A stretch of DNA of 64,000 bases from Utricularia gibba (Eukaryota > Plantae > Magnoliophyta), in assembly GCA_002189035.1 (NCBI GenBank), contig NEEC01000008.1:806001-870000 (forward strand). The letters run 5' to 3'. Both the position numbers and the translations under genes were made by a program. Positions 1,149-43,568 of the stretch are shown here, one piece after another. How positions within the stretch are numbered: position 1 is the first letter of the stretch; every line of letters starts with the position of its first letter. Under the pieces are notes generated by a model that was not told the DNA's origin, did no database searches, and saw only the letters and a program-made list of their open reading frames with translations.

Positions 1149-1400
1149 TGTTGGGTCCGGCCCATTATATCACTTTAGGCAATTAGGAGTTTCCTATATA
1201 AACCAGGCGGCTCATCCGAGTTAGAGTACCGAACCGGAATTGTGGTGGGATCGTTGCTCCTCCTATGCCTTCAGCCATGGTATTTATCCCTTGAATTTGT
1301 TTTGTTGATGATAGGCTTTTGCAGTTGTGGATAGATGCATGTTTGGGTTCTTGGTTGATTTTTTTTTATTGCTTGGTTATTGATTGTGAAAAAATATTTC
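1149..1400 (+). promoter_or_regulatory. Captured copy of the RPL36a promoter, ATG micro-exon and 5' intron part (source about 35336-35587)
   Basis: GGCCCA site II at 1159, TATATAAA at 1195, gccttcagccATG|gtat at 1277-1281; TATA-to-ATG spacing is 82 nt, identical to the source locus (35382 to 35464). Confidence 0.9.
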
Positions 1401-2851
1401 TAGAGTCTAACATGATGTATATATATATGATTGTCCAGAAATCCAGAACGTGTCATCTAATGGAACTTAGATCATTACCAAGCCAACGAAGTCAATTCAG
1501 ATGGTTGTTGTCTATAGTATGCTGCATTCTACTATTCACTCTATCTAACATCTTCATTCAATATTTTGGTAAGTGATACATCACATGTTCTAAATTCTTC
1601 TCAAACTTGACAACATGCATGCTTATAGCTTCCTTTTCTACAGTGAATTTGGAGATATCAATGGTGCTGGATCTCAAACTGCTTAAATATTCCAAAGAAC
1701 TAGAGAAATGGGTAGATCAAATGCCAGAATCAATACATAATTTGACCAATTCCAGATCAGATGCATATCAACTTGATGGAGATATAAGAGTTGATGGGAA
1801 ATCTTCAACTATTCTCATAGCAAGTTCGCAAGATCATATTACCTCTTGGACTTTGAAGCCTTACACTAGAAAATTTGATCCTTATGTAATGAACTATGTC
1901 AAGATGTGGAAGATCAATGCTCAACCTGCTGCAAATCTCCCTTCGTGTGATCGAAAAATGACATCTCCAGCCGTACTATTCTCTGGAGGGGGATATACTG
2001 GAAACCAATTCCATGACTTTACTGATGTGCTTATTCCCCTCTACTTAACATCACGACACTTCAACATGACTGTCGTTTTTCTTTTGACAGATATGCGGTA
2101 CCCTTGGCTCAGAAAATATGTGGACATACTCCACAAGCTTTCCATGTATGAAATTATCAACATGGACAAGGAGAACCAAGTGATATGTTTTACAAAGATG
2201 ATTGTTGGCCTTAGAGCTCACAAAGAGTTTGGAATAGATGTTCTTCAATATCCTCACTACTCCATGATGGACTTTAGGGAGTTCCTCAGAAGCACCTACT
2301 TGCTACAGAGACGTCTGTTACCTAATGGTTCATGCTCAGCAAAGCCTCGGTTGCTCATCATTTCACGGAAGAGCAGCCGTCTCCTGAAGAACGAGGACAG
2401 AGTAGCAGATTTGGCACAGAATATCGGATTACATGTGACAACAACTGAGATAGATGACAAGAACATGACAACAGTTTCAAGATTTGTGAACTCATTTGAC
2501 ATTATCATGGGGGTTCATGGAGCTGGATTAGCCAACATGGTTTACCTACCGGACAATGCAGTTGTGATTGAAATAGTACCTTTTGGAGTGGACTCGTTGG
2601 CAAGACCTTATTTTAATATTCCTTCAAGAGAAATGAACCTGAGATATATTGAATACAAAGTAAGCTTGGAAGAGAGCTCTTTGCTAGGAAGGTATCCAGC
2701 AGACAGTGAAGTGTACCGACATCCAGGTGAAATCCAACGTAAAGGTTTTCTTGGGTTTAGGTCTATTTATCTGGATAATCAAGATGTAACCCTTGATTTG
2801 AATAGGTTTAGGAGGGTTCTTTTGAGAGCCCTGAGTTACATATGTGGCTAG
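1277..2851 (+). CDS. Glycosyltransferase family 61 (DUF563; xylan arabinosyl/xylosyltransferase-like), type II membrane protein; probable exons 1277-1279, 1439-1568, 1644-2851
   Basis: 414-aa ORF with GGYTGNQFHDFTDVLIPLY and FDIIMGVHGAGLANMVYLP..VIEIVPFG motifs; upstream exon encodes a TM helix (WLLSIVCCILLFTLSNIFIQYF) and joins in phase 1. The start exon is inferred; in-frame ATGs also exist at 1412 and 1460. Confidence 0.9.
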
Positions 2852-3046
2852 CATCTAATGAGTCAAGGATTCAGATGTTCTAGTTTCGAACTACTATTCA
2901 TGGCTTTCATTAAATAAGTGGATGATCCCGGATAATCACAAGCAAAGCAATGAATCACCTACTACTAATGAACAAGCTGTTGAACCACAAGCTCGGATGG
3001 ACAGCTCCAACATGAATACATGGATGGAAGATGTCCGACTTTTAAT

Positions 3047-3856
3047 TCAAGTGTCACGGGGAAGGCGCCTCGTTGCAAGTGTAGAATAATAGTGGGACTC
3101 CAACTCCCTCAGGCTAGCAGAGGCTTCTTCACCTATTCTCGCCAGTGATGAGTTTGTGTCATCAGCTAATCTTCCAAATACCTCTGTTTTTTGATCAATG
3201 TGGTCATTCAGAGATGCAAATCCAGAGTAGACCGCAGTCTGCTTCAGCTCAGATACCAGCTTCAGAAGCGAGTCTGCTGCTTGGACCTGTCATACACACA
3301 CACACAGTACACCCAAACACAAATGTCAGCTTCTCCTGAATTCTTCAGATGCATGAGAATGACGACAGTTTACCAAACGTGCAGCCCGCATCTCCATCAT
3401 GAAAGTTTCTTGGGAATTTCTGACTGGTGGATCATTAACCTAGAAGGAGCATTTTACTATTAGATGCAGCCATACTTGAAAGAATCGAACTTTCATCAGA
3501 GGAAGCATGTTTGTTCACATCAGCCGCATCAGGACTTCCACCCAATAGGGCAACTTAACAAATTGACATATTTCTAATGGCAATACTGTCTCCTGCGAGA
3601 CGAATTCCACAATGCGATTTTCTGAGACAAACTTGGGAGATGATCTAAAGATGAAATCTTCACCAAACACCCATCAGTAGAAGGCAAAGGCACATGAACA
3701 TACCCTTGTCGCATTCACCAGGAACCCGAAATTATCCAAAAGATTTCCAATGTCATTGTCCACCCTCTGCAGAAGCGATTTCTGCTTCTGCGCCGCCGCT
3801 GCGGCTGCGGCGTCTGTCGGTCCACCTCCGCCCAGGCCCGCTGCTGCTTTGTTCAT
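3047..3856 (-). CDS. MED22: Mediator subunit 22; exons 3856-3704, 3439-3374, 3286-3047
   Basis: [29 protein letters not shown] / [22 protein letters not shown] / [38 protein letters not shown]; all introns GT-AG and in frame. Confidence 0.95.
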
Positions 3857-23725: not shown

Positions 23726-25179
23726 CGCCTAATACGAGGTATGTTTCGCTGGGGGGGAGTCTGCTTTGCATCAATTTTCTTGAATTTTCATCCAAGAGAT
23801 TAAAGATAATTGCTTCTTTACATCCTAATTCATATCCAATATCTGCATCAGCTCAAGTGTAAGCTGAGACTCTTGAATTTGGTTTTTGATATTGGCCTTG
23901 TTCTGCAGTTAGCGAACTTCGTCCACTAGAAAAATCCGTTTGGAGAATGCTTGGCCTGTTCAATCAGGCGTTTATTTTGGTTTTAATCATGAATCCCAGA
24001 TGGCTATTGTATAGTCTCATCTGTGTCATGTTTAACTCAACCTGCTGTAACCTGTGCTCAACTGTGTTGCAAATAATATCATTCGCCGTGGAATGGTACT
24101 ATCCGGTTTCACTAATTTACCTTTTTATGGATTTCCTCGGAAAGTGTGGCTTGGTGGTTTGATAATTGGCCCCTGCATACGACACATAGATATGATACAG
24201 CTCGGTGAGGTGAAAAAATGCACATTTTGTCTCATAAGTGTTGATTCTCTTACAGCCTTGCCCCTGAAGCTGTTCTTGTACATTCGTGTAAGAAGCATCA
24301 TCTATGAGCAATAATGCACTGTGGCCTCCTTCCATTCTTCCTTGAAAGGCTGTAGTCGTAACTGATGGCAGCAGTGTTGCTGTTATCGTTACCATGGAAG
24401 GAAGCTTTTTAAAACTGTGTTGAAGCGCACTTCCAACTAATAGCTGTGTCCGTGCTTACATTTTTTATATCCTGTGATCTGATGATATCCATCATAACAT
24501 ATGAAATCCTATGACTAGCAAGCCATCAATTAATAGGTTTGCATTTAGTTGGAATGCATGCTTCAAAATTTTGTCGTTTGGTTTGTGGTTTTACATTTTG
24601 CCTCGTGGTTCCACCGCTGGGGTAACTTGATCTGGAATTTCAATTCCCCAAAGGAGTATTAGAATAAGAATCAAAGCTTGTTGCATAAGGTTTAAGGCGA
24701 AGGTAGGTCACACAGTCAATCCACAGATATCGGGAGTACATTTCTGTGTTCAATGTGTTAAATACCAGTTTTGTTGGGGTGCCTCGTCGGCCAAATCTTT
24801 TATTGTTTTCAAGCACAGAGAATGAATGGACAAAGTTTCTCACGGGACTGCTGTTCGTCCCTCAGACTCTGAAGAGCAGCAACATACTTGGAAAAGGCCT
24901 ACCTGACAGACAACTTGCGCTCAAGCAGCAGTAAACACTTCGTGGCCTTAGGTGAGCTTTCTTTTTTATGCGTGATGTAATTATAATACATATGTCTGCA
25001 TCAATGTTAAAGTTTTAAAATATATAGATATTTTTATCTAGTGAATTGATATAAAAACAATGACATATCTGCATATTAGACTATAAAAAAATATAAAATA
25101 TATAATTATAAAAAATATAAAATTATCTCATGTGCATGAAAATATAAATACATGTGGAGTTGTCAAAATCCATGAGAAT

Positions 25180-28100
25180 AAGGTATTAAGATATATTTGT
25201 AATTTTAATTTCTAAGATAGATGAGATTTTTAAAAAAAATTGTTAAATACATGAGATTTCATTTATATACTTAAAATTATGGAAAAATTAATATATTTAA
25301 TTATTATTTTTTAATAAATAAATAAAAATTTATCAACTATATATTATTTTCATAACGTTTTAAGATAATTGTATAAATATAATATATTTAAACTATTCAA
25401 TATATATCAAAAAATTATTTAATGCAAAATAAATTATCATTGCTATAATTTTTTTTAAATAGCTATATAAAAACGATATATTTAATTTATTTAATATAAA
25501 ACTAATCAAGCTATACATATATTTAAAAAGATTACATAAAAACCATCAATTTAAATTTAAAATAATTATAAAAATAATGTATTCATTTTACATGATTTGT
25601 AATCTTATTGCATTTATTTCAAAAAAGTTAATTTTATCATGTATTTTAAATCTCCAATAATTTCGTAATTTTAATTATTTATTTTATACAATTAAATCAC
25701 AAATTATATTGATTTTCATTATGATTTATCTGAAATTAAAAATAATTAATTTTCATTCATTTCGTAATGTGATATGCAATTTTATAGAATACTTATCATG
25801 ACAAACATAACATTCAATATTTAAGTAATTCTATCAAACAAATAAGTCAAATATCATATAACTCAAATGATAATTATTGAAATTAATGTATCAAATGGAA
25901 AAAAAAATGATTTACTGTTTGACTTAGATTTTTTGTATTTTGTTGTTGATATTGATGGTGAGTTATATGAGTTTAACAGTGATATTGATGTACAATGTCA
26001 TGTAATAAGGGTGTGTTTGGTTAGAGATATTGTTAGGTATGGGGTTTGATGATTATTAGTTATTTGAGAGTAATTGGTATGGAATGAAATATGATAATGA
26101 TATATTTACTAATGCATGCCTATATTAATTTGTGGTGTAGATGAGGATTATGGAAAAAGAGTTTGGGTTGAGGAAGAAAAAAACGCCTTGATCCTTGCTT
26201 TTAAATAGAGAATTGCAGATAAGTGGAAGTACGATAATTCATTTAAAGCTGAATATATTAATGTATTAGATGATATCTTGAAGAAAATGTTACCATGAGC
26301 TAACATTAAGGGTAACCCCCATATTTCTTCTAAGTATAAGGTTTGGAAAATAAACTTTGGAAAGATACATGACTTTGTTTCAAGATCTGGAAATAGTCTT
26401 GATTTAATCACACATAAGATTGATGCAACTAAGGAGCATTGAGATGAGTTGTTAAAGGTACAATTTAATTGATTTTCGATTTAACATTATGTATATTAAC
26501 TCATACAATTTTATTGTTTTTTTTTTCTTTTGTATAGCATGATAGGAAGACCTATATTGCTTTGAAAGATAAAGTTTTTCTTTACTATAACGATTAGCTT
26601 GAGATCTTCGTTAAAGATCATGCAAATGGAAATGGTACAATAGGAGCAACTGATGAAGGATTAGAGGATATTGCTGCCTCTTCGTATAAGATCAAAATGT
26701 GTGTTTAATTTCCTATAAGTTGCTATTTGACACCATTGGCTGTAGAATACTTGCAACTAAGCATTCAACCATTCTTCATACATTGCAACAGTAAGATTAT
26801 CACATAAAGCATTCCGAGCAGGGGTAGATTCAACCGTATCAATGTAATCTTGACCTTCTTCATTCACCTCTTGATAATCTTCCGGGACTTCGGCTTCTAT
26901 TGGATCGTGCTCCATTTCTCGACATATGAAATTATGGAGTAAGGCACATGCAATGATCACTCTCGTTTGCGTCTAGATAGCATAGAAGGATGGACTCCGT
27001 AGAATACCCCATCGCTTTTTCATTATTCCCCATACTCTCTCAATTACGTTTCTTGTCTTCTCATGTCGCATATTGTAATAGTCATTTTCATTTTATGATA
27101 CTTTCGTTCCAGACCCCCATTCCTTTAGATGGTAGTGACACCACAATACGGGGTTAGAAACCCCTCACAATTGGTATATCCACAATCACCTAAATAGTAA
27201 TAACCTACAAAAATAATCAACTTAGATAGTCATTCAAATTATCACATTTTTTCAAAAATTGCAACTTGTTTTATGTAAAATGACTGATGTTCATCATATA
27301 ATCTGAAATTTAATCAAGTTAACAAAAAAAAGAATAACTTGATCACATAAACATTCATAACTTAATAGAAAAACAAAGACAATCAACAAGTAAATAGAAT
27401 CTATAAGGTCAAATACACTATTCATGAAAAGCTACAACATAAAAAATGATACATACTCAAAATACTCATAAAAATAATCACATTACTTGTGCGAACATGA
27501 AAATCTGGATTCTAAGTAAGTGCATGACGTAGAACACGTCTATCCGCAACCAAACCTTCCTAACCGACAAGTATATATATAAAGTTCATTTTCTCGTTGC
27601 AAACCCCTAGAACATTGGTTAATATTCCACCTTTATAACTTCTATAAAGCTTCTTTTCAGACTCTTTAACCATAACATCTACAAACGTTCCATCTAAAGC
27701 CCCCCAAACAATTTTAAAATATTTGAAAGGAATTTCACCAATTATGGGTTCTGGTTTAACTAACAAAATATCATGTAATTTCAAAATACACTGAAGTACG
27801 GAGTTAACATATTTGCTAATGGTCTCAATAGACCTTTTAAAATCAAACTTAAGAACTCTCATTTTTTTGTGATGATTTAGGAAACCAAGGAAAATGGCTA
27901 CTTTTTCAGACACTGTAATATATTTCAATGATTTCAATCCACCACAAAGAGATAATAAAACACATAGATGCTTGAAAATATCTTCACTAATCCTAAGATT
28001 TTCAAGAGAAGCACCTCGACAATCACTAAATAAGTCTCTTAAATATGCAAATTGTCTAGGAATTCTTTCTTTCATAGAGTAGGTGATACAAGTTCTAGAA

Positions 28101-28990
28101 TTTTAACGCAGCTTCCTAACCCAAAACCAGAAAAATGCATACTCCATTTGTAACAAATTATTTGAATGAAACTTCAACATGAGCATTAAATTCAGTGAAA
28201 ACATTTGGATTCATGGATAGTATAATTAATCAAACCCTACGACAAAAAAAGACTTCCAATTATTGAATTTAGGCACTAACTTGAAAACATGAAAACAATA
28301 TCGATTTAACATATGCTAATTTCATTGAACATAGAATTCTAACATAAAAAATTGTGCGAATCCAGGGATATTGGGCTAATTTAACCAAATTTAAAAAAAA
28401 TAAACAACAAACCTGAGAGGAAATAAGGTAGAAAGATCGCACGCAACTTTTCCCCAAAAACCCAGCAAGAATCGATGCTTCAATTGGCCAACTTGGAAAT
28501 CTAGGTTTTTTTGGGATGCTTCAATTGGCCAACGAGAATCGATCCTTCAAGTATGAGAAGAAGGTATGCTTTATTTCAGTTTTTTTAATTAAATAGAAAT
28601 TATAAAAATAAGGGTAAAATTGTAAATACAATATAAGGTATTAGAAAGTTCAAAGTTTCAAGACTCCACATCCAAATCCTATACCTAAGAGATATTAAAG
28701 TATTTTTTAAAAAAACCTATGGAATAAGCATAATTGATACCAAACACAGGATTTGCAATCCAATACTTTCAAAATAACCCCAATACCCCATGCCAAACAC
28801 ACTCTAATAGGAATCATGATGCCATGTGCATATTGGTTCTTATGAAAGGATGAATGTTTATAAGAATGATTGGAAGACGAACTTTGAATTGAGATTGAAA
28901 GAATGTCGTCTCGTCTATCATCCTTGGAAGTGTCTATGGATTTTTGTTTTTATCGTGATCTGTGTTTACTAATTTATTGGTTTGATAATT
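25180..28990 (-). mobile_element. MULE copy A: 3' end of the 39.3-43.3 kb MULE family in reverse orientation, split by a Harbinger
   Basis: 25.5-26.0 kb and 28.81-28.97 kb align by eye to the reverse complement of about 42360-43000; outer boundary approximate. Confidence 0.8.
26009..28804. mobile_element. PIF/Harbinger element with both ends (about 2.8 kb); transposase on -, Myb/SANT-like ORF on +, both disrupted
   Basis: TIRs GGGTGTGTTTGG (26009) / CCAAACACACTC (28793-28804), TAA TSD at 26006-26008 and 28805-28807; transposase WGALDGTFV..GILTNVLGVC, YYYLGDCGY..RNVIERVWG..KKRWGIL; Myb-like RVWVEEE..SFKAEY..HISSKYKVWK. Confidence 0.93.
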
Positions 28991-29220
28991 AATAGAACAA
29001 CTATATCTAACGGTGCTATCACAACCTAATTTTTTTCTTTTTTCGCATATGAAATCTAAAATACAAGTGTTGTGGAAATCTAAAATGATGTATTATCTTA
29101 ATCACACTCATCGTGTAAAGGGTTAACAACTCTTGCAAAATTGTTAACCAAATACATAGTGCTATAATAAATTCTTGTCCTATGCAATGAACGCAGAATT
29201 AGTGATAAGCCAGTAAATTA

Positions 29221-29868
29221 TACCAACAGATGATTCTGAGTTGCTATTTATATTTGTAGAGAAAAACTTGTATCATCGCTAAGTAGAGGATTAAGAAACC
29301 TTACCAAATAGCATATCAGTACAAGAAGCCGCAATACAGTGGTTACGCCTACAAAAATATGAACTTAATCATCATCAAATTATCACAAACAGAAAGTAGA
29401 AAATGGAGAAGTAGGAAAGATTGATGCTGGAGGTTTGATGAAACTTATGATGCCATCCTATTAATAGGTGGGCTTTTTGTACTCAATTTTGGACCCGATC
29501 CATGATATCATTTTGGGCTACTGGGGTTTACTATATATTGGACGAGAATTGTGGTGGGATCAGTTCTCCTCTAGTGCTTTCAACCATGATATATGCCCAT
29601 TTACTCTATTTTCGTTAATGATATGTTTTTGGAGTTGTGGGTAAATTTATATTTGGGTTTCAAATTAATTTTGTTTATTGCTTGATTATCGATTTCAAAA
29701 AAATATTCCTAAAATCCACTATGATGCATAGATATATAATTGTCTAGAAATAAAAAATATATCATGAAATGAGACTTGTATCACCATCAAACCAACAAAA
29801 GCAATTCAAATGGGTGTTGTCTATAGTTGTTGTATTCTACTATTTACCTTATCTAATATTTTCATAAA
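29221..29868 (+). pseudogene. Decayed second copy of the PNM1-fragment / RPL36a-promoter / GT61-exon chimera
   Basis: 29222-29270 matches 34990-35039; about 29385-29710 matches 35232-35587; 29720-29868 matches the GT61 exon region 1412-1560; donor mutated (ATG ATAT at 29586) and stop in exon. Confidence 0.85.
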
Positions 29869-29879
29869 AACTATCATTT

Positions 29880-31900
29880 TTTATGAATTGAATTACGTAA
29901 TATATGATTCAAGCCTTATAAAAATAATAAAATTGAAATATACTACGATGTATGCTAAATTGATTTAATAGATGGTAAATGTATTAGAATTAAATTTAAA
30001 TCAATTTGAATTTAATTTGATCGTTAAATACTATGATTCTAATATCGGATGTGTCAATTACATTGATAAATAAGAAGATTTAAAGTGTCTACTCTATCTA
30101 TATATTCACTTTAAAAAACAAAATAGGCTAAAAAAAGTTACTCTAAAAAATATTATAATAGTTTTGTTTTTATATGTTAAATAATAATATAGATGCAATC
30201 TATTAAAATAAAAAACATAGAAGTGCATGGTTCGTGCTCATAAATTAGAATTTAAAACTTTGGGAATCACCGATTAAAAAACTATCCAAATTCCTTGAAA
30301 AACTTAAATCTAATAATCTTGGTACTATTATAGAATAAGAGTACAATAAAAATGCATGTGAACGAAATTTGTTCAATTATGTCTTATAGATAATTTGAGT
30401 TCATCATTAAAGTTTTTCAATATTATCATTGAGTTCTCTGTATTGGTGGCGCTCATTTATACAATAGTTATACTTACAAATTGCTAATATATGTGAGTGT
30501 TGATGAAAGTAAGTATATTTTCTCAATCGGATATGCCTTTGTCTATGGAGAATCATAAGAATATTAGAAATTCTTCTTGCGACAAGTTGACCAACATGTT
30601 GTCTATGGAAGAAATGGTGTTTGTAAGATACTTGATCATGGCCCGGATTTGATTGTTGTATATGAAAGATATGAACGGTTCAGCTATACTTATGAAATAC
30701 ATTATTGGTGCAATTTGTATGTTTGAAAGAATTGTATGTTATTTATTAATAAAAAGTTGAAAGAAGTTGGGTATTCGATCAAAAGGGCATTATATGCAAT
30801 AAATGAAAACAATTTCAATGCAAATATGGTATAAATACTAAAAAAGATTTTATTGATACACGTGATTACTTATTGAAAATTCTAAAATAAAAATTGATAT
30901 TATTTTACAATATAAGACAAATGCATTAAATCTAACGAATTTATCATATTTAATTAAATTATCACATTTTTTATTTGAAACATACACTTAATCATGATAA
31001 CAAATCAGATCAAATTTATTAACAATGTTTTAAGAGTAGCTCAATGTAATTTTCAATTGCACTTGCAAAGATAACTTGCTAATTAATTTATCTTCAATTG
31101 AATATTTTATTTGACGTATTCCATGATACTTTAAAGTAACATTTGAAAAAGCATGTTAGTACTTTAAATGATATAGGATGGCAACATACAAATGATATAC
31201 AAATAAAATATTTTTGAATGATAAGGTTTATGAAAAGTATAAACAAGTATCGAAATTTATACCAAAACTTATATGCACAAAATACGACTCAACAAATCAA
31301 ACTTATACATTGTAACTTCGAATACAATATTTAATAAACATAAAAACGGTTGAAGTCAAAAATAGAAAATGTAAATGCGGGGTTTGATAGATTGATAGAT
31401 ATCCATGTGTTCATGCTCAAATGATAAGTGATTTAAATATCACACTAATTTAATAATATTGTTCAATTTTTTATCTAAAATAAATAATTTGAAGATTTGT
31501 CATCAATTTCATGTGAATCCATTATATACAATGAGTGTTTATTATAACATTATATATTTGATCGAAATACATCTATTAGAATGAAAAAAAAGATGGCATT
31601 CTTCCAATCTCAATTCAAACTTAATCTTCCAACTATTTTTATGGATACTCATCCTTCACGAGAGTCAATATGTCTTGGATATTATGACTTCTGCTTTTCA
31701 ATGATATTCTATATCAATATTGCGATCAAATCCACCTAACTTACCAACAACATTAGCAATAAAAATATAAAAAATTTAAGTCAATGTGTAAATCATTTTT
31801 TTCATTTGATCCATTAATTTTGGCAATTGTCATTTGAGTTATATGATATTTAGCTTATTTGTTTAATAAAATTACTTAAATTGAGTTAATTTTATATTTT
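29880..31900 (+). mobile_element. MULE copy B: internally deleted, decayed relative of the 39.3-43.3 kb element
   Basis: Blocks match 39800-39960, 40890-40950, 41170-41500, 41700-42200 and 42410-42670 by eye. Confidence 0.8.
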
Positions 31901-32399
31901 ATAATTATATATCTATATTTTTTCATTCAAATATATAGACGTCATTATTTTTGTATTAATTCATGAGATAAAAATATCTATATATTTTGAAACTTTCACA
32001 TTGATATAGATATATACATCACAAGTTGATATAACCCTCCAAATAAAAAGTGTTTGACAAACCAAATCTTGGATTCATAAGTAGTAATACTTCAATAAAA
32101 AAAAGAAGTTGGATCTTAAAGATTGGAAATACTTGTAACCCAAATTATGAAATTGTATTACACTTATAGAATATAAAGAAGTAAATGAGAGTGATAAACT
32201 ATACATTAGACATCACAAGTAAGACTTGATAGGTCTTAAATTCTATAAGAACTCAAAGAAGAAATATTGTTTTCAAAATTTATTACAATTAAAGTTATTC
32301 TTAAATAATAGTAAAACACTTCTTATATAAGTGGATAAGTGACTTATTCAAACAGAAGTAATACTAATAAACTAAAAAGTTGATCTATCAACTTAATTC

Positions 32400-33614: not shown

Positions 33615-35232
33615 TTAAGCACGGCGCATCGTGCGTTTTGGTTTCTTGACATAGCTTAGCCTGATTTTCTTGAGGCGTCTTCTCTTCCTGGCCATCTTCT
33701 CGGGGAGCGTTTCCCTTTTGCTTTCCCTCTTCGCGCCTGCTGCAGCTTTCTTTTGACAAACTTGGGATCCACCCTGTATTCCTTTGGCTCCACAGGTATT
33801 CCATTGCTCTCAGCTTCCTTGTAGAGTGCATTGGCCTTGTCAAAACGCCCATGAGCGCATAGTTTTGCCATCAACAGGTCATATGTTTTGATGCCAGGTT
33901 GACAACCATCCCTTTTCATCATTTCAAAAACTCTCAAAGCATGGTAGAATCTTTCGATTCCGCACAAAGCACGGATGAATTCGTAGTAAACCTTCTTATC
34001 TAGAGCATCTCCATAACCAGCGGATTTCATCTTATCGATCATCTCATCTCCTTCCCCCACACGGGCTGCCTGATACAAACTCTTGGTAAGGACGATAAAG
34101 GTAGTTTCATTGGGTGGCAGCTCCACTCCCCCATCCTGGAAAACAGTTTCACTGCATCCTCCGTTTTCCTAATCTTGCATAAGTTGGTAATCAGTATGTT
34201 AAATGTGTCCACGTTGCGGGGAACACCCTTTCTTTCCATCTCAATCAACAGATTCTGCGTCTCAGATTCAAGCCGGAAGGGATCCTTCTGCCTGCAAAGC
34301 CTACAAACACAGTCTAGAAGACAATTGTATGCAAATGTACTTATCTCGAAGCCTCCTCTGGACATCTCATTCATCAATCTTCTTGCCTCTTCTAATTTTC
34401 CATCTACACACCACCCACTGATCAAGGCATCACAAATGTAGTCATCAGGAAAGAACTCATTAGCCAAACTCTTGACCATCTTTTCAGCATAGCTGGCGTA
34501 CCCTCGCTCGCAGAGACTGGAAACAACAAACTTCAAAGAACTCATATCTCTTTTAAAACCATAATCTTTCTTCATCTTACCAAATAATGCAACGGTATCA
34601 CTTGGTCTACCGGCCCGAACCAAGCGATCAACAAAAGCTTCAAAACATTTCACCCCAACTACCCCACGGCCATCAACCAGAGCCTCATGGATAGCCTTAA
34701 AATCCTTCCTTCTCCCAAAATAATGTACCCAATAAGAGTAAACCTCATCCGTGGCTTCAAACCCCGGCCTTGATTTCGCCCATTGGAGGAAATCAAGCGC
34801 CGCACGACCCGCATCAGGCGAAATGTTGAGCGTGGCAAGCAGCAAGGTGGGATTAATGGTCACATGAGAAAATGAGAAGTCGAGACTTTTAAGCAACGGG
34901 AGACTTTCCGCTTCCGGCGATTGCAAGAGCTCATTAGAGAGAAGTTTCGCCGAGGCATCTTCATCTTCTCCAACTTCCTTTTGTTTCTCACCAACAGAGG
35001 ATCCCGAGGCGACATCTATATTCGTAGAGAAAAGCCTTGCGCTCGCGGAGAAGAGCTGAAATTGAGGAACAGAGAAGGGATTCTCATACACTGTACATCG
35101 ATAAGGCTCCCGCCCCAGAACAGGATACGGATGCGTAAAAATCAAGCGGTTCAACGATCTTGGAGCTCTGGAGATGCTGCGAAGGCATTGACGCAAGTTT
35201 GGCGCCAAGGAAGAAATCAAGGGCTTGCGCAT
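33615..35232 (-). CDS. PNM1: P-type PPR protein, PNM1-like (mitochondrial/nuclear; mitoribosome-associated); single exon with two apparent 1-nt frameshifts (about 34113 and about 33752)
   Basis: Mitochondrial-type presequence, PPR repeats (YNCLLDCVC, TFNILITNL, TYDLLMAKL) and basic C-terminus KRETLPEKMARKRRRLKKIRLSYVKKPKRTMRRA, as recalled for PNM1. Confidence 0.85.
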
Positions 35233-35463
35233 TTTCACAGAAAAGAGGAACTGGAGTGAAGCAGGAAGCAGTTCTGGAGGTGCGACGAAAACCTATGACG
35301 GCGTCGTATTAGTGGGTGGGCTTTTGGGATTCAGTGTTTGGGCTCGGCCCATTATATCATTTTAGGCCGTTAGAGGTTTAGTATATAAATGTTAGGGCTC
35401 CTCCAAATTAGGGTACTGAACGGGGAATCGTAATCGATTGCTGCTCCTTCGGTGCCTTCAGCC
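35233..35463. promoter_or_regulatory. Bidirectional promoter between PNM1-like and RPL36a (231 bp between start codons)
   Basis: Head-to-head ATGs at 35232 and 35464; site II TGGGCT at 35317 and 35339, GGCCCA at 35346; TATATAAA at 35382. Confidence 0.8.
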
Positions 35464-36445
<982 letters not shown>

Positions 36446-36600: not shown

Positions 36601-38403
36601 CTAATGCTCCTTTAATTTTGAAATCATATAAAAGATCTTGTACAAGAGCTCATCAGTGCCCTCTGCATTTGATGGGAAAGGATTAGTCCAGTCCTGATAC
36701 CGGTGTAGACTGCCAGTGAAGTCTGTGAATAGCCCATCAACACCCATCTTGTGGATCCAGTAATCATATTCAAGGTATGGATCTTGGCTGAAATTGAAAT
36801 GTAAAAATTGGTTCTCATTCCTGTAGGTGTATGGATGCACCTGCATCAAGATGAATGGTAGTTAGTACATGAGGTATTCGAGAAACCATGTTTTTGAGTA
36901 GAACCTCTCTCTGTACCTGGAGATTACGAGCGTGTGCCCTGGATATGAGATCTGTTGGCGCTTCTAAATAGTTGTTTACCGGAGGATCGAGTGTGTCCTT
37001 CCATGGACCAATTCCGACAACATAATTCTTGATGTAGTCGAGATACTTATTCGAAGTGATCTCGTAGAATGTCTGGCCATGGATGCAGTGTAGCACAGTT
37101 AGGGTAATTTAAGATGAGTTTCATGATGTATATGCCCAGGGTTGAGAGGGTGACCTGATTTGTGTCCTGAGTGGGAATGTCAACATCATCGATGAGAAAA
37201 ATCTTGGGCAGATCAGTGAGGGAGGCAGCGTAGATGAGAGAAGTGGGGGCAAAAGATTGAATGAAACAGGGCTGCTTAAGCCATGACTCTGTCAAATAAT
37301 CCCCTTTGTATCCATACTTCACAAGAGTCTTCACGAACACATCCTCCACCCGCTGACCTGCAGGCCATTTTACCTGTTGGTACAATGCAATGGTGATACA
37401 CAATTTTCATTTCTTTTTTGTACTTGTGACCCCGAAGGCAGTCTCATGGAAATAACACTCACATGCTGGTTGATGAACACTGGATTCTTGATCTCTGGAT
37501 AGATGCCCACAACTCGAGAAGCATTGAGAGCAATCTCAATGAACTCTTCAAAGGTGATGATGTGATACCTTCCTGCAGACAGGCTCAGTACATGTAACTT
37601 CGTGCAATGTAACCTTTTGCATTTCATAAACTGGAGGATGCTTGCTGCATACCGTTGTACTGCTGATCACGAAAAGAATACCTCTGGTTCAGCCTCAGTG
37701 TTTTCAGTTCTTCCAGTGTGAAGTCAACTGTACATGGATACATGTTTAAGGCGATGAGGGTCTGAACAAGAATGCATCAGAAGCAAGAGGGCTACCGGTG
37801 AAGAAGCCAGTAACATTCTGTCCCTGCACTACGTAGGTTCTATTCCTGCCAGCAAACTCCTTGTGACTAGCAATGTTCGTCACAGCATCAAGAGTGAGAT
37901 CATGGAAGCATATCAGAAAACCGTCTTTTGATGCTATAATGTCCGTCTCTATGAAATCAGCACCTTCCTTAATAGCTCTCTGCAATTCTACCAAGCCATA
38001 TGTCAAAGAAAAATCTCGCACACCGTGAGCAGAGGATTCTGGAAACTCAAATCAATTCCGTTTCAACAAATCGCATCAACCAAAGCGTGAAATCAGCGGC
38101 GCAAAATCATGGAGTCAGTACGGATTCATATAACCCTACCTTGTAAGCTGGTCCAGATTCTTCTGGAAGCTCCCCATTGGCGCCACGATGAGCGATGTTG
38201 TAGGCGCGAAAGGTCTGAAGTTGTGTCTTCTGGAGATTCTGATTACCATCGCTAGGCAGAGGACTAAAAACCCTCGCCGCGGAGCATATCGGCACAAGAA
38301 GCAGCAATAGGAGGAGTACGCCTATAGAAATATGAACCCGATCATCATCGAATCATCGCAACAGTCGACAAGCCAATTCACCGCGCTCACCATTTGAAGC
38401 CAT
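36601..38403 (-). CDS. GDPD6: Glycerophosphodiester phosphodiesterase, GDPD5/6-type, secreted
   Basis: Signal peptide; YNIAHRGANGELPEE, ADFIETDI..KDG.LICFHD, GIYPEIKNP, FIQSFAPTSL, VHPYTYRNE, GVDGLFTDF; all exons join in frame. Confidence 0.9.
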
Positions 38404-39275
38404 TGGAGAAGTCCGAAAGCAGCAGCAGCGACCGATAATATTCTTGCCGGCATAATCATGGGGATATAAATAAAGAGGGTGTTTATCTCTCCCTCCCATT
38501 TTTTTTTTAAAAAAATACTGTAATATGTTTCATCTGTAACATTATATAAACAAATGTGACTGAACTGACTTTCAAGCCAAAAGTCATGATTTCCTAAATG
38601 AAAAAGAATCTTCCATATCGATCTGCTATCTTACACTTGAGAGTAGGCCGTTGACTTTTCAGGGAGGTTTGAAAGTCAACGAGACTCCCCAGATTTGACT
38701 CCTCACTTTCTAATTGCATTTTAATGCACATTATTTCACAATTTGAACCAGAGGTCGGTCCCCTGCCTCCTCCACATCACCATGAAATGAATATCAACGA
38801 GTTTTGTTACCCTAAAGCATTTTTTTATTAATTTAATGCATATATCTACTAATGATTACAAAATTTGAATAATAATTTTATTATACAATTTATAAATCAT
38901 GAAATAAATTAATTTTTCATTCACATTAATTTAGATTATTTATTTAGTACTGATAACTTATAATTATATTTTTTGAATAATTAATATGCATTTAATTTTC
39001 TTGAAATGTTTATATTTAGGTCCCATATCAACAATTATTGATATTGAAACTGTGATTTGAGAAATTTTTAAAAACTATTTTTATTTTAAAAATAGAATTA
39101 ATTTGTTGTGAAGACTCAACTTTCTCTGAAAATAAAAAAAATAAAACATAAAATTATAAAAATTTCGATGTCCAAAACCAATAGACATTTTTTTTCTTTT
39201 TCTGCCTCTTTCGACATCTTTTTTTCTTTTCTGCCTAAACACGGCATTTACTTAATCCCAGCTCCGTCGCTATGT

Positions 39276-42200
39276 AGATGTACTTAACTATTTTGGTTTC
39301 TAAAATAAATGAGGTTGATAAATAATTACTGAAATAGATGTAGTTTTTTTTCTGATTTGATAAATAAATGATATTACTAAAATATTAAATTTTAAGTATT
39401 TAATTATTTATTTTCAATGAATTTAAATGACAATAAATATTCTTATGAATTGATTATATCTAAATAATGCTTTAATATTTAATTAATTTAATAAAATTAA
39501 AGTTTTTTAACATTTAAAATATATAAATGATAGCTTGGATGTTTTTAAAATAATTTTGTAAGACAAAACAAGTGATTGATTTTAAGATAATAAAGTTGTG
39601 GATAATCATGAGATATACAAATGAATGGTTTAAATTCCATCTTGTAACAAAAATATCTCCAAACTTTCTTTATAAATAAGTTCATGATTTCATGAAAACT
39701 CACACAAAACTTTTCAATTTTCTTAACTTCTTGTTGTTCATTACAGCAATGAAGAAAGTAGTGGTTAAGATTTTCTATGTATAAAATCTTATTCGCGATC
39801 AATTGGATTATGTATCATATGATTGAGATCCAATAAAAATAATAAAATTGAAATACACTACGATGTATGAAAAATTAGTTGAGTATCTTGCAAATGAATT
39901 AGAATTAAATTTAAATTCTCTTGAATTTAATTTATCAACTAAGTTCTATGATTCTAATACCGAAAGTGCCAATTATATGGATATTACAAACATAGAAATG
40001 TTGCGATTTGTTTTGAAGCTACATAACTCAGAATATGGTATTGACTTGTTCGTGAGTACAAGAGCTAAGTGGGGTGACATTTCAACAAATTATCAAGGTA
40101 TATTTTCTATTATCTTATTGAACTTGCGAGTGAACCACGTTATAATATTGCGCATCCATTAAATGATGATCAAGGAGAATTTGATCCGTTTTGGAATCAA
40201 ACAACTCAAGTTGATTATGCGAGTTTTCATTATAGTGAATCTAATATCTCACATCATGAAGTTTCAAACACCTATAACAGTAATGAAGACTCAACATATA
40301 TTCCTAATGAGGAAGAAGATGAATTATAAGAAGTTCAATACATGTGGAATGAGGAATCTGGTGAATCTGATGAATCTTCTATGGAAGATGAAGATATGGA
40401 TTTTTACATCCCAAAACAAACTAATCATTTTTATTTATGCATATGAGTTTCAAGATAGAGTTCAAATAAACACTTATGATGTTGATAACAAAATTTTGGA
40501 AGAAGGTATGCATTTCAAAGATAAACAGGAGCTTATTGATGCAATGACTCTCTATCATGTAAAAGTTGCACATAGAGAAATTAGAGTGGAAAGCAATTCT
40601 CAGAAACAATATTGCATCCGGTGCCGACAAAATAAGGAAGAGAACTCTAATTGCTCGTTCTATCTATGGGTTGGCTTTCAAAAACAAACTGGAACTTGGA
40701 AGATTTCTAAGTTGGTGCAACCTCATACATGTGAGATAAGTTTTAGCATTTCCAAGTCAAATGTTAATTTGACTATAAAGTATATTGCACCAAGGTTAAA
40801 AGAACTTGCTTCAGAAAAGCTTATTTTTTAATTTGTGCGCTTATATGTTAAACACCAATGGGGATGCAATATATCGAAATTAAAGGCATGGAAGTGTATA
40901 GTTCGTGCTCATGAATTAGAATTTGAAACTTGGGAATCCAGTTAGAGAGCTACCAAGGTTTTTTTGAAGATGTTAAGTCTAGTAATCCTAGCACCATTGT
41001 AGAATGGGAGCACAATAAAGATGTATATGGGCGAAATTTATTATAGTATGTCTTTTGGGCATTTGGATTTACTATTCAAGGCTTTGAGTATTGTCGCCCG
41101 ATTCTCTGTATTGATGGCACTCATTTCTATAGTAGTTATAATTACAAGTTGCTAGTATGTGTAGGTATTGATGGAAGTAATTGTGTTTTTCCGATCGCAT
41201 ATGCTTTTGTTTATGGAGAATCAGAAGAAGATTGGGAATTCTTCATCTGACAACTTGATCGACATGTTGTCTGTGGAAGAAATGGTGTTCGTATGATAAG
41301 TGATCGTGGTTCTGGTTTGATCGCCGCATATAAAAGATATGAACGATTTAGCTATACTTATAGGATACATCATTAGTGTAATTTTCATATTCAAAAGAAT
41401 TGCATGTCATTTATTAATATGAAGTCGAAGGAAGTTAGATATTGGATTGAAAGGGCATCATATGCTAGAAATGAAAAAGATTTCAATGCAACGATGACAT
41501 AATTACAAAAAAGAGCTCTTGATGCAATTGATTACTTGCTGAAAATTCCAAAAGAAGAACAGACGTTACTTTACGGTGGTAGATATAGGTAAATGAATTT
41601 AATGAATTTTTTTTAAATTTAATTAAATTACTTAATTTTTTCTATTTAAAACAATCACTTGATCATGACCACAAACCATGCGGAGTTTATGAACAATGTT
41701 TTACAAGCAGCTCGAAGAAGACCTCCAACTACCCTTGTAATATAATTGACATATTATATAATACTTTAAGTTAACATTTGAGAAAGCACGTGAGTATTTC
41801 AAGTGATACAGGGTGGCAGCATATGAACGACATACAAATTGAATATTTTTGGGTGATAAGATGTACGAAAAATATGAGAAAGCATCAAGACTTATATCAA
41901 ATCTTACTTGCAAGATATACGACTCAAGAAATCAAACTTGTATAGTGAAGCTTCGAATGTAGCATTCTGTAGACACAAAAACAGTCGAAGTTCGAGATGG
42001 AAAATGTGAATACGGGATTTGGTATATTGATCAATATCTATGTGTTCATGCCCAAATGGTAAGTGGTTTATACCTCACACTAATTTAATACTATTGTTCA
42101 TTTTTTATATCTAAAGTGAATAATATGCAGGTTTGTCATCAATTCCGTGTGAATCCGCTGCATAGGACAAGTCCTTATTACAGTACTATGTATTTGGTTA

Positions 42201-43272
42201 ACATTTATGCTGGAGTTGTTAACACTTTACGTGATGAGCATAATTGGGGTGACGCACCATTCCAGGTTTTCATGGATCCTTTGCGAAAAAGGAAGAAATC
42301 AGGCCATGACAATACTAATAGACATAGGGGTCCCGTTGATTACCAACAGAGTGGTAAACATGGATCACGACGCAAATAGAAATCAAAGGACACTTCCCAG
42401 GATGATAGACGAGACAACATTCTCCCAACTTCAATGCAAACTTCATCTTCATATCATTCTTATAGACATTCATCATTTCATGAGAGTCACTATACACTAG
42501 GTATCATGACTCCTATTATTGCACGACATTCTACATCAATATCGTGATCAAAGCCATCTGACTTGCCAACAACGTCAACAACTCAATCCAAAAAGTCAAA
42601 GTCAAAGAGTAAACCGTTTTTTTTCTTTTGATTTGTTAATTTCAGTATTTTCATTTGAATTATGTAATATCTTACTCCTTTGTTTGGTGAGATTGGTTAA
42701 ATATTGAATTTTTTATTTTTTATTATAAATAATATGTAATATCATATGTCATGGTATAAAATAAATGAAAATTAATTATGTATAATTTTATATAATTCAT
42801 AATCTAAATCAATATGATTTTTGAACAAAATCAATGAAATAAATGAAAAAATTATCAAAAATGAAAAACACAAATGATAAAATTAACTTTTTGAAACAAA
42901 TGTAATAAGATTACAAATCATAAAAAACAAATAAATAATTTTTTACATTTATTTAAATTTAAACAAATGATTTATATATAAAACTTGATTATTTTTTTAT
43001 TTTCTAAATTAAATATATGATTTATATAATTATTTATAAAAAAACTTATAGTAATATTAATTCATTTATATTAAATAGCATACATTATTTTGAAATATTA
43101 TGAAAATAATATATAATCATTTATTTAATAATTTTTAACAATAATTAGTTACATTGTTTTTATAAAGTTTTTAAACTCATTTATTTTGTAAATCAAAACT
43201 CAATCATCATCTATTTTAGAAACCATTTTTAAACATCATCTATTTTGACAAACAAAAACTGAAAGTACATCT
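39276..43272 (+). mobile_element. MULE/MuDR element copy C with terminal inverted repeats and decayed transposase (about 39850-42380)
   Basis: Ends AGATGTACTT (39276) / AAGTACATCT (43263-43272) with further subterminal symmetry; MuDR domain (EGMHFKDKQEL..WKISKLVQPHTC), MULE domain (CRPILCIDGTH..FPIAYA..GESEEDW..ISDRGSGL), SWIM-like segment; stops and frameshifts. Confidence 0.88.
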
Positions 43273-43568
43273 AAACACGGCATTTACTTAATCCCTCCCT
43301 CTTTCATAGCTACATATCTTTACGGCTAAGGAATGGGAAATCTTTCTCCTGTTCCCGCGCCCCATATCTTTACGGCTAAGGAATGGCATTTACATAATAT
43401 TTCTTGACTTGGGAGCGCCTAATTCATTCATTGCATGTCCTCCAAAGCACAACATATCATGAACGTATACGGGTAGGTTCCTTCAGGCTGCCGAGGGGGC
43501 GAAAAAACAAAAGAATAAAACAGACAGTGGGCAATGTGTTTGTTCCTTTTCTTACCTGGATGCGTTTC

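Follow-up and report, generated by a model that had tools for sequence, protein, structure and literature searches.

Pack-MULEs are Mutator-like elements that carry host gene fragments, and are present in rice, maize, Arabidopsis and tomato. They combine pieces of several host genes, show a preference for broadly expressed, open-chromatin parents and are bounded by TSDs of 8-11 bp (PMC5861414). MULEs readily acquire host sequence and even extra TIR sequence, by a mechanism that is unknown, and what is acquired can be incorporated into extended TIRs (PMC3310237). A second class of gene-capturing elements, the single-copy Pack-TIRs described in animals by Tan et al. (2021), exhibits a strong cis bias, with most parents <15 kb away and with microhomology at the breakpoints, and has been ascribed to gap filling that is transposition-independent and involves template switching (PMC8277862).

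We analyzed a patchwork of ~645-650 bp (hereafter copy 2) that lies amid Mutator-derived sequence in a 64-kb window, that is, the whole stretch of DNA under study, and compared it with these systems. As in Pack-MULEs, host fragments that include a promoter and a 5΄ exon are placed between inverted Mutator-derived arms, the parental copies of these pieces are not TE-associated, and the ribosomal-protein gene RPL36a, as a broadly expressed, open-chromatin parent, fits the known acquisition preference (PMC5861414). However, a TSD of the surrounding element (MULE B) was not found at its candidate ends, its arms duplicate the MULE 3΄ end in inverted form, coding sequence included, and are not ordinary TIRs, all of the sources are local, and a fully decayed transposase remnant of ~2 kb (29883-31912) is retained, whereas classical Pack-MULEs are non-autonomous and contain no transposase sequence. 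The likeness to single-copy Pack-TIRs consists of TE sequence on both sides of the filler, joints at TE-internal positions, parents located nearby in cis and possible short microhomologies at the breakpoints; in contrast to that class, the filler here is composite, with four pieces, one of the TE sides duplicates the other in inverted orientation, and the host is a plant rather than an animal. Finally, an ordinary segmental duplicate decaying in a transposon nest would likewise be non-functional, AT-enriched and ~25% diverged from its paralog, but copy 2 comprises the first ~650 bp alone, is scrambled with foreign filler and has both edges within TE sequence. Transposon-associated capture of gene fragments is in itself an ordinary event, of a kind that is known and common in plants.

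Composition of the mosaic

The PNM1, RPL36a and GDPD genes form a cluster at 34-38 kb of the window (Table 1), in which PNM1 and RPL36a are arranged head-to-head with a bidirectional promoter of 231 bp between them. A GT61 gene is found at 1149-2851 (Pfam PF04577, Glyco_transf_61, E 2.7e-12), and the 250 bp upstream of it were copied from the promoter, ATG and intron start of RPL36a, to which they are 77% identical; this fusion, which we call copy 1, is continuous with the intact gene, whose large exon occupies 1607-2851. Exons and ORF pieces were searched one by one rather than as spliced models of GT61 and RPL36a, and translations were not carried past stop codons. The best homologs of PNM1, from Orobanche, Sesamum, Rehmannia and Erythranthe, are 60-73% identical, and one Logan fragment is 80% identical; these homologs place the window in the Lamiales. 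Because homologs at 60-73% protein identity are this distant, a non-coding comparison with the PNM1 loci of these relatives would be meaningless.

Table 1. Coordinates of the features discussed, in window positions
Feature	Position	Strand	Evidence or remark
Copy 1	1149-1568	+	Fusion of GT61 exon 1 with an RPL36a-derived 5΄ part (promoter, ATG, start of intron)
Left MULE arm, outer	24972-26008	-	25359-26008 matches the reverse complement of MULE A 42516-43138 (72%, E 5e-95); A-like terminus near 25189
PIF/Harbinger-type insertion	26009-28804	.	Splits left arm; TIR GGGTGTGTTTGG/CCAAACACACTC; 3-bp TSD TAA at 26006-26008 and 28805-28807
Left MULE arm, inner	28805-29221	-	71% to the reverse complement of MULE A 42120-42518 (E 4e-58); transposase 3΄ exon region, SWIM-like finger onward
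Copy 2: PNM1 CDS fragment	29222-29265	+	80% to 34990-35033 over 44 bp (E 9e-5)
Copy 2: GDPD filler	29271-29388	+	75% to 38244-38361 (E 9e-18); 118 bp, exon 1 and upstream
Copy 2: PNM1/RPL36a bidirectional promoter, whole	29389-29585	+	Three-way alignment; TATA at 29532
Copy 2: RPL36a ATG micro-exon and first ~120 bp of intron 1	29586-29708	+	ATG 29586-29588; three-way alignment
Copy 2: GT61 leader and transmembrane first exon, decayed	29709-29866	+	Acceptor AG 29746-47; ends ~10 bp short of exon 3΄ end
Right MULE part	29867-32022	+	Direct orientation; decayed transposase region; ends in outer inverted repeat; no left TIR
PNM1-type PPR gene	33618-35232	minus	ATG at 35232; Pfam PPR; homologs named PNM1; tblastn
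Parent locus	34990-35585	+	PNM1 5΄ part (minus strand), bidirectional promoter, RPL36a ATG (35464), intron 1 start
RPL36a/L44e gene	ATG at 35464-35466	plus	First exon is the ATG alone; Pfam and tblastn
GDPD gene	near 38 kb	minus	Pfam on the exon neighbouring the filler source; tblastn
GDPD filler source	38244-38361	+	BLASTN match to copy 2
MULE copy A	39275-43273	+	258-bp TIRs, 69% alike; decayed DBD_Tnp_Mut, MULE and SWIM-like regions in the right order

We searched positions 29100-30000 against the 64-kb window by BLASTN, and resolved copy 2 into pieces from four sources, namely 34990-35033, 38244-38361, 35237-35585 and GT61. The PNM1 fragment begins ~200 bp into the coding sequence and keeps the orientation of the parent locus. 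It is followed by the GDPD filler, which takes the place of parent positions 35034-35236 and separates PNM1 from promoter sequence. The stretch that covers the promoter, ATG and intron start (29389-29708) matches 35237-35585 at 67% (E 5e-21), and 29546-29865 match copy 1 at 1237-1557 with 75.5% identity over 322 columns (E 2e-57). The order of the sources is scrambled, and all of them lie in cis on the same contig at a distance of 5-28 kb (5.1 kb for PNM1/RPL36a, 8.4 kb for GDPD and 28 kb for the fusion gene). No GT61 sequence beyond the first exon was detected elsewhere in the window, either by tblastn with the 414-aa exon or by sensitive blastn with 1557-3600.

The original prediction had described this stretch as aligning in order to PNM1, promoter, RPL36a and GT61 sequence. 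All of the named pieces do match, but the series is interrupted by the filler at 29271-29388 and is not colinear. The presence of the whole promoter, including the part deleted in copy 1, was borne out, with ~100 bp of it (35238-35337) kept at 29389-29480. Similarity of the GT61 part to copy 1 had been set beforehand as the comparison on which the prediction should stand or fall; searched alone, 29721-29865 matched 1412-1557 significantly, at 77.4% (E 2.9e-27), the next best match in the 64 kb having an E of 0.027. Since copy 2 retains both the promoter and intron 1 sequence of RPL36a (120 bp), it is a DNA-level copy, and an origin as a retrocopy or processed pseudogene was ruled out.

Three further observations concern the host genes. 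Alignment of the PNM1 gene on the minus strand (33618-35232) with Sesamum PNM1 runs through three frames, with switches near 34112 and 33730, which represent either two frameshifts, making the gene a possible pseudogene, or assembly indels. The GDPD first-exon ORF (from 38307; 38285-38355, minus strand) has no in-frame upstream ATG before a TGA at 38355-38353. Pieces of the PNM1 coding sequence also occur upstream of copy 1 (679-1147), where 679-959 match 34527-34807 and 968-1051 match the reverse complement of 34829-34912; they are 95% identical to the gene, whereas the promoter-derived sequence beside them (1055-1398) is merely 77-78% identical. This difference indicates that the pieces belong to two classes of different age or that the coding ones have undergone gene conversion.

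A common junction and a decayed copy

In a three-way alignment of the parent and the two copies, the RPL36a homology stopped at the same column in both copies (between 1398 and 1399 in copy 1, and between 29708 and 29709 in copy 2, corresponding to 35585 in the parent). In addition, the 16-mer GAATTGTGGTGGGATC is common to both copies (29546-29561 and 1237-1252), while the parent has a different 16-base sequence at this place; its presence in the copies and absence from the RPL36a locus had been noted in the original prediction and were confirmed here. The same breakpoint and the same derived 16-mer support the earlier claim that the fusion formed once, and the identical junction points do not represent independent events. 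We have very high confidence that the RPL36a::GT61 junction has a common origin, having arisen once and left two diverged copies. Because copy 2 retains promoter sequence that copy 1 later lost, both descend from a larger segment, as had been proposed, comprising at least 34990-35585 together with the GT61 leader and transmembrane exon. For the same reason, the ~100-bp promoter deletion in the live copy postdates the fusion, and copy 2 preserves the ancestral state of the captured promoter.

In the columns derived from RPL36a, the two copies agree with each other against the parent at 33 sites, whereas 26 changes are specific to copy 1 and 33 to copy 2. With 33 shared against 26 and 33 private sites, the tree of the three sequences is nearly a star. 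Under a rough clock, the split between the copies would have come fairly soon after the fusion, with a longer shared stem if the parental promoter has been constrained. The JC distance between copies 1 and 2 is ~0.3. Neutral rates commonly used for plants are 0.7-1.3e-8 per site per year, and the two together give a divergence of roughly 10-20 million years. Copy 2 can thus be read as a dated fossil of the RPL36a::GT61 fusion, with a junction that is real and old.

The signs of decay that had been described for copy 2 were all seen on the sequence. The splice donor that follows its ATG has AT instead of GT, at 29589. The TATA-to-ATG distance is 54 nt, compared with 82 nt in copy 1 and the parent, as a result of a 28-bp deletion just after the TATA that is private to this dead copy. 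Stop codons follow both possible starts: the exon after the acceptor reads AAA TAA, with the stop at 29751, and the native GT61 ATG (29764) is followed by AAA TGA, with the stop at 29770. There is also a 1-bp deletion near 29827 in the GT61 exon. The reported excess of C>T and G>A changes was likewise found. Such changes account for 22 of the 33 copy-2-specific changes, whereas the copy-1 branch has 11 among its 26 (Fisher p 0.07), and in the exon part the GC>AT asymmetry is 18 versus 6 (binomial p 0.023). Private changes strike 31% of the ancestral G/C sites in copy 2 but 6% of the A/T sites. Copy 2 has a GC content of 32%, lower than those of copy 1 (38%) and the parent (44%), and that of the transposon DNA around copy 2 is 16-31%. 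Deamination of methylated cytosines is a plausible cause of this bias.

Because the donor is lost, the exon contains stops, the TATA-ATG spacing is altered and the surroundings are AT-rich, decayed transposon sequence, no function would be expected of copy 2. We also considered siRNA cross-talk between the copies and rejected it: GAATTGTGGTGGGATC is the longest exact word common to them, and since 16 nt is too short, silencing of the live GT61 gene by copy 2 is unlikely.

MULE sequence around copy 2

We used MULE A, which lies in the same window, as the reference element. Its 33-aa ORF piece matched PF10551 (MULE) with E 9.5e-4 and 20 bits, under the cutoff of 27.6, and PF03108 (DBD_Tnp_Mut) was matched with E 0.049, below the Pfam threshold; the SWIM-like CSC...IPC motif was read by eye, and most of the MULE ORF pieces had no match in Pfam. 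Taken together, the domain order and the long AT-rich TIRs would fit a decayed MULE, with each Pfam match being sub-threshold. A perfect 25-bp direct repeat brackets MULE A (39235-39259 and 43271-43295), with a 15-bp spacer before the left TIR; this length far exceeds that of a Mutator TSD (8-11 bp).

The region at 24.5-32.6 kb was then aligned onto MULE A. The right MULE part is similar to MULE A over three segments, 29883-30068 (39798-39983 in MULE A, 79%), 30170-31560 (40841-42196, 74%, E 0) and 31597-31912 (42418-42730). At the right edge of copy 2, the joint at ~29867-29875 corresponds to ~39780-39798 of MULE A, ~500 bp inside the element and within or just before the transposase reading frame. 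The left edge of copy 2 joins the reverse complement of MULE A at ~42120, within the 3΄ exon region of the transposase gene. There, the inverted left arm has its inner edge (29221, corresponding to ~42119 of MULE A, in 42040-42125) within a few bases of an intron/exon boundary in the SWIM-like finger. The ends of MULE B therefore point outward, while both edges of copy 2 abut MULE-internal sequence, and copy 2 takes the position of a MULE left end. These positions do not agree with the original prediction that MULE copy B cuts copy 2 at about 29880: an insertion would have left a TIR adjoining copy 2, and internal sequence is found there instead, so a cut by MULE insertion is not supported.

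The arms of MULE B are inverted to each other, with similarity between 24990-25130 and 31882-32015 (83%), 25803-26001 and 31701-31899 (79%), and 28829-28924 and 31578-31672 (76%). They are thus more alike mutually (76-83%) than either is to MULE A (71-74%). Unlike a normal TIR, the left arm repeats 1.15 kb of the MULE 3΄ end in inverted orientation, with coding sequence and extra-terminal DNA included. An A-like terminus was found in the left arm, near 25189 (z 4.6), but was not significant in the right arm (z 0.7), and the inverted similarity extends ~150-200 bp past the A-like terminus on the left, into sequence that recurs inverted at 31882-32022. Because the right arm is without an A-like terminus and the inverted similarity passes the left one, the outer limits of MULE B, and its unity as one element, are provisional. 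No TSD of 8-11 bp was found for four candidate end pairs with +/-12 bp of slack, where low-complexity AT matches alone were seen; decay of 20-25% could have erased it.

The left arm is split by a cleanly bounded insertion of 2.8 kb, whose assignment to the Harbinger type rests on its TIR and TAA TSD. Its ORFs at 27560-28075 and 26757-26960 (minus strand) had no Pfam match. MULE A still has the empty target site, at 42516-42518, and similarity of the left arm to MULE A continues unbroken from one side of the insertion to the other; the Harbinger-type element landed after the left arm had formed.

Origin of the mosaic

We favor, with a probability of roughly 60%, the explanation that copy 2 is a short 5΄-end piece of the ancestral fusion that was copied, together with GDPD filler, into a broken MULE by template-switching repair and then decayed. 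The RPL36a-promoter::GT61 junction formed once, beforehand. A short stretch running from the PNM1 5΄ coding sequence through the promoter, ATG and intron start to the GT61 transmembrane exon would then have been copied into a MULE 28 kb away, and the 118-bp GDPD filler would have entered with it. The most likely route is a break in the MULE repaired by synthesis that switched templates among nearby sequences (gap filling or abortive gap repair), as has been proposed for single-copy Pack-TIRs and Pack-MULEs, and in the same or a linked event the left end of the MULE would have given way to its right end, copied in inverted orientation. The catalytic exons of GT61 would never have been part of the captured piece. 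This piece has since decayed with a GC>AT bias like that of the surrounding AT-rich transposon DNA, and the Harbinger-type element later landed in the left arm.

Several results bear on the nature and direction of this event. Copy 2 is better read as a captured fragment than as a decayed duplicate of the whole gene, because the window contains no further GT61 sequence, the joints are MULE-internal and the GDPD filler is present. The original prediction had one copy surviving and the other decaying; copy 2 is indeed dead, but a second whole gene copy is not supported, since GT61 sequence beyond exon 1 is absent from the window, and its history is better described as transposon-associated fragment capture. 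Transfer from the gene to the MULE is favored because copy 1 adjoins an intact GT61 gene with no TE ends around it, and because copy 1 has parental positions 35134-35237, which are absent from copy 2, and lacks the GDPD filler. On the other hand, capture is weakened by the TSD not found at the candidate ends, by the retention of ~2 kb of transposase-derived sequence, unlike in classical Pack-MULEs, and by the fact that two MULE insertions with inward deletions would give the same map, albeit in more steps. Microhomologies of 1-5 nt occur at the joints of copy 2, such as CA(A)CAG where GDPD sequence meets the promoter (29385-29392), and at 20-30% divergence they are indistinguishable from chance. 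If capture is the correct reading, copy 2 adds a dicot case in which gene fragments from several local sources were captured at a Mutator-like element, and is relevant to the origins of Pack-MULEs.

Alternatively, the whole fusion gene or a large segment could have been duplicated here, after which a MULE inserted at each side of it, the remainder of GT61 and the inward MULE ends being lost by deletion. The common junction and the retained promoter fit any duplication of the ancestral fusion, deletions are plausible in a region that is a transposon nest, and no TSD binds the two arms into one element. However, this course of events needs at least two insertions of the same family in opposite orientation, two inward deletions each taking exactly the mosaic-facing TIR, and a separate insertion of the GDPD filler. 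The lack of a GT61 remnant beyond exon 1 in the window, and arms that are closer to each other (76-83%) than to MULE A (71-74%) and have common sequence past the terminus, also make it unlikely.

It could also be supposed that the mosaic was assembled in a MULE elsewhere and transposed here as a unit, that is, as a mobile Pack-MULE, given that fragments of several host genes sit between inverted MULE arms. We consider this improbable, as none of the four sources is more than 35 kb away in cis, a pattern that marks local single-copy capture and not capture in trans followed by transposition (PMC8277862); moreover, no TSD was found, and the left arm, with its 1.15 kb of inverted 3΄ end including coding and extra-terminal DNA, is not a normal TIR.

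The near-star tree, with its short stem (33 shared against 26 and 33 private sites), implies that the sequence alone does not fix the order of events, and the junction might have been made first inside the MULE mosaic and brought from there, through gene conversion or recombination, to the GT61 locus. Such a reversal is quite improbable, for a GT61 exon would have to be captured, fused and then put back at precisely the homologous position, while copy 1 has PNM1/promoter pieces (35134-35237) that are missing in copy 2 and lacks the filler. No TE ends lie near copy 1; TIRs were looked for around it, to examine a Pack-MULE origin of the live GT61 gene, and none was found. As for chance similarity in AT-rich DNA (32% GC) or an assembly artefact, we give these practically no weight, because the E values (2e-57 and 2.9e-27, the next match being 0.027) speak against the former and, as the original prediction had argued from the existence of two copies, a 25% divergence with a directional mutation bias is unlike mis-assembly and rules out the latter.

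A further observation concerns the right joint of copy 2, where an ORF (29810-29968) runs in frame from the decayed GT61 transmembrane exon into the MULE ORF, and its LKYTTMYAKLI matches MKYTTMYEKLV of MULE A. An in-frame GT61-MULE ORF, with the RPL36a promoter pointing in the same direction as the transposase, is probably a coincidence in AT-rich DNA. It is highly improbable, in our estimation, that the MULE exchanged its left end and 5΄ region for the host RPL36a promoter, leader intron and first exon, and that these once drove a transposase that is now dead; if this were true, MULE B would be a transposon that hijacked a constitutive host promoter.
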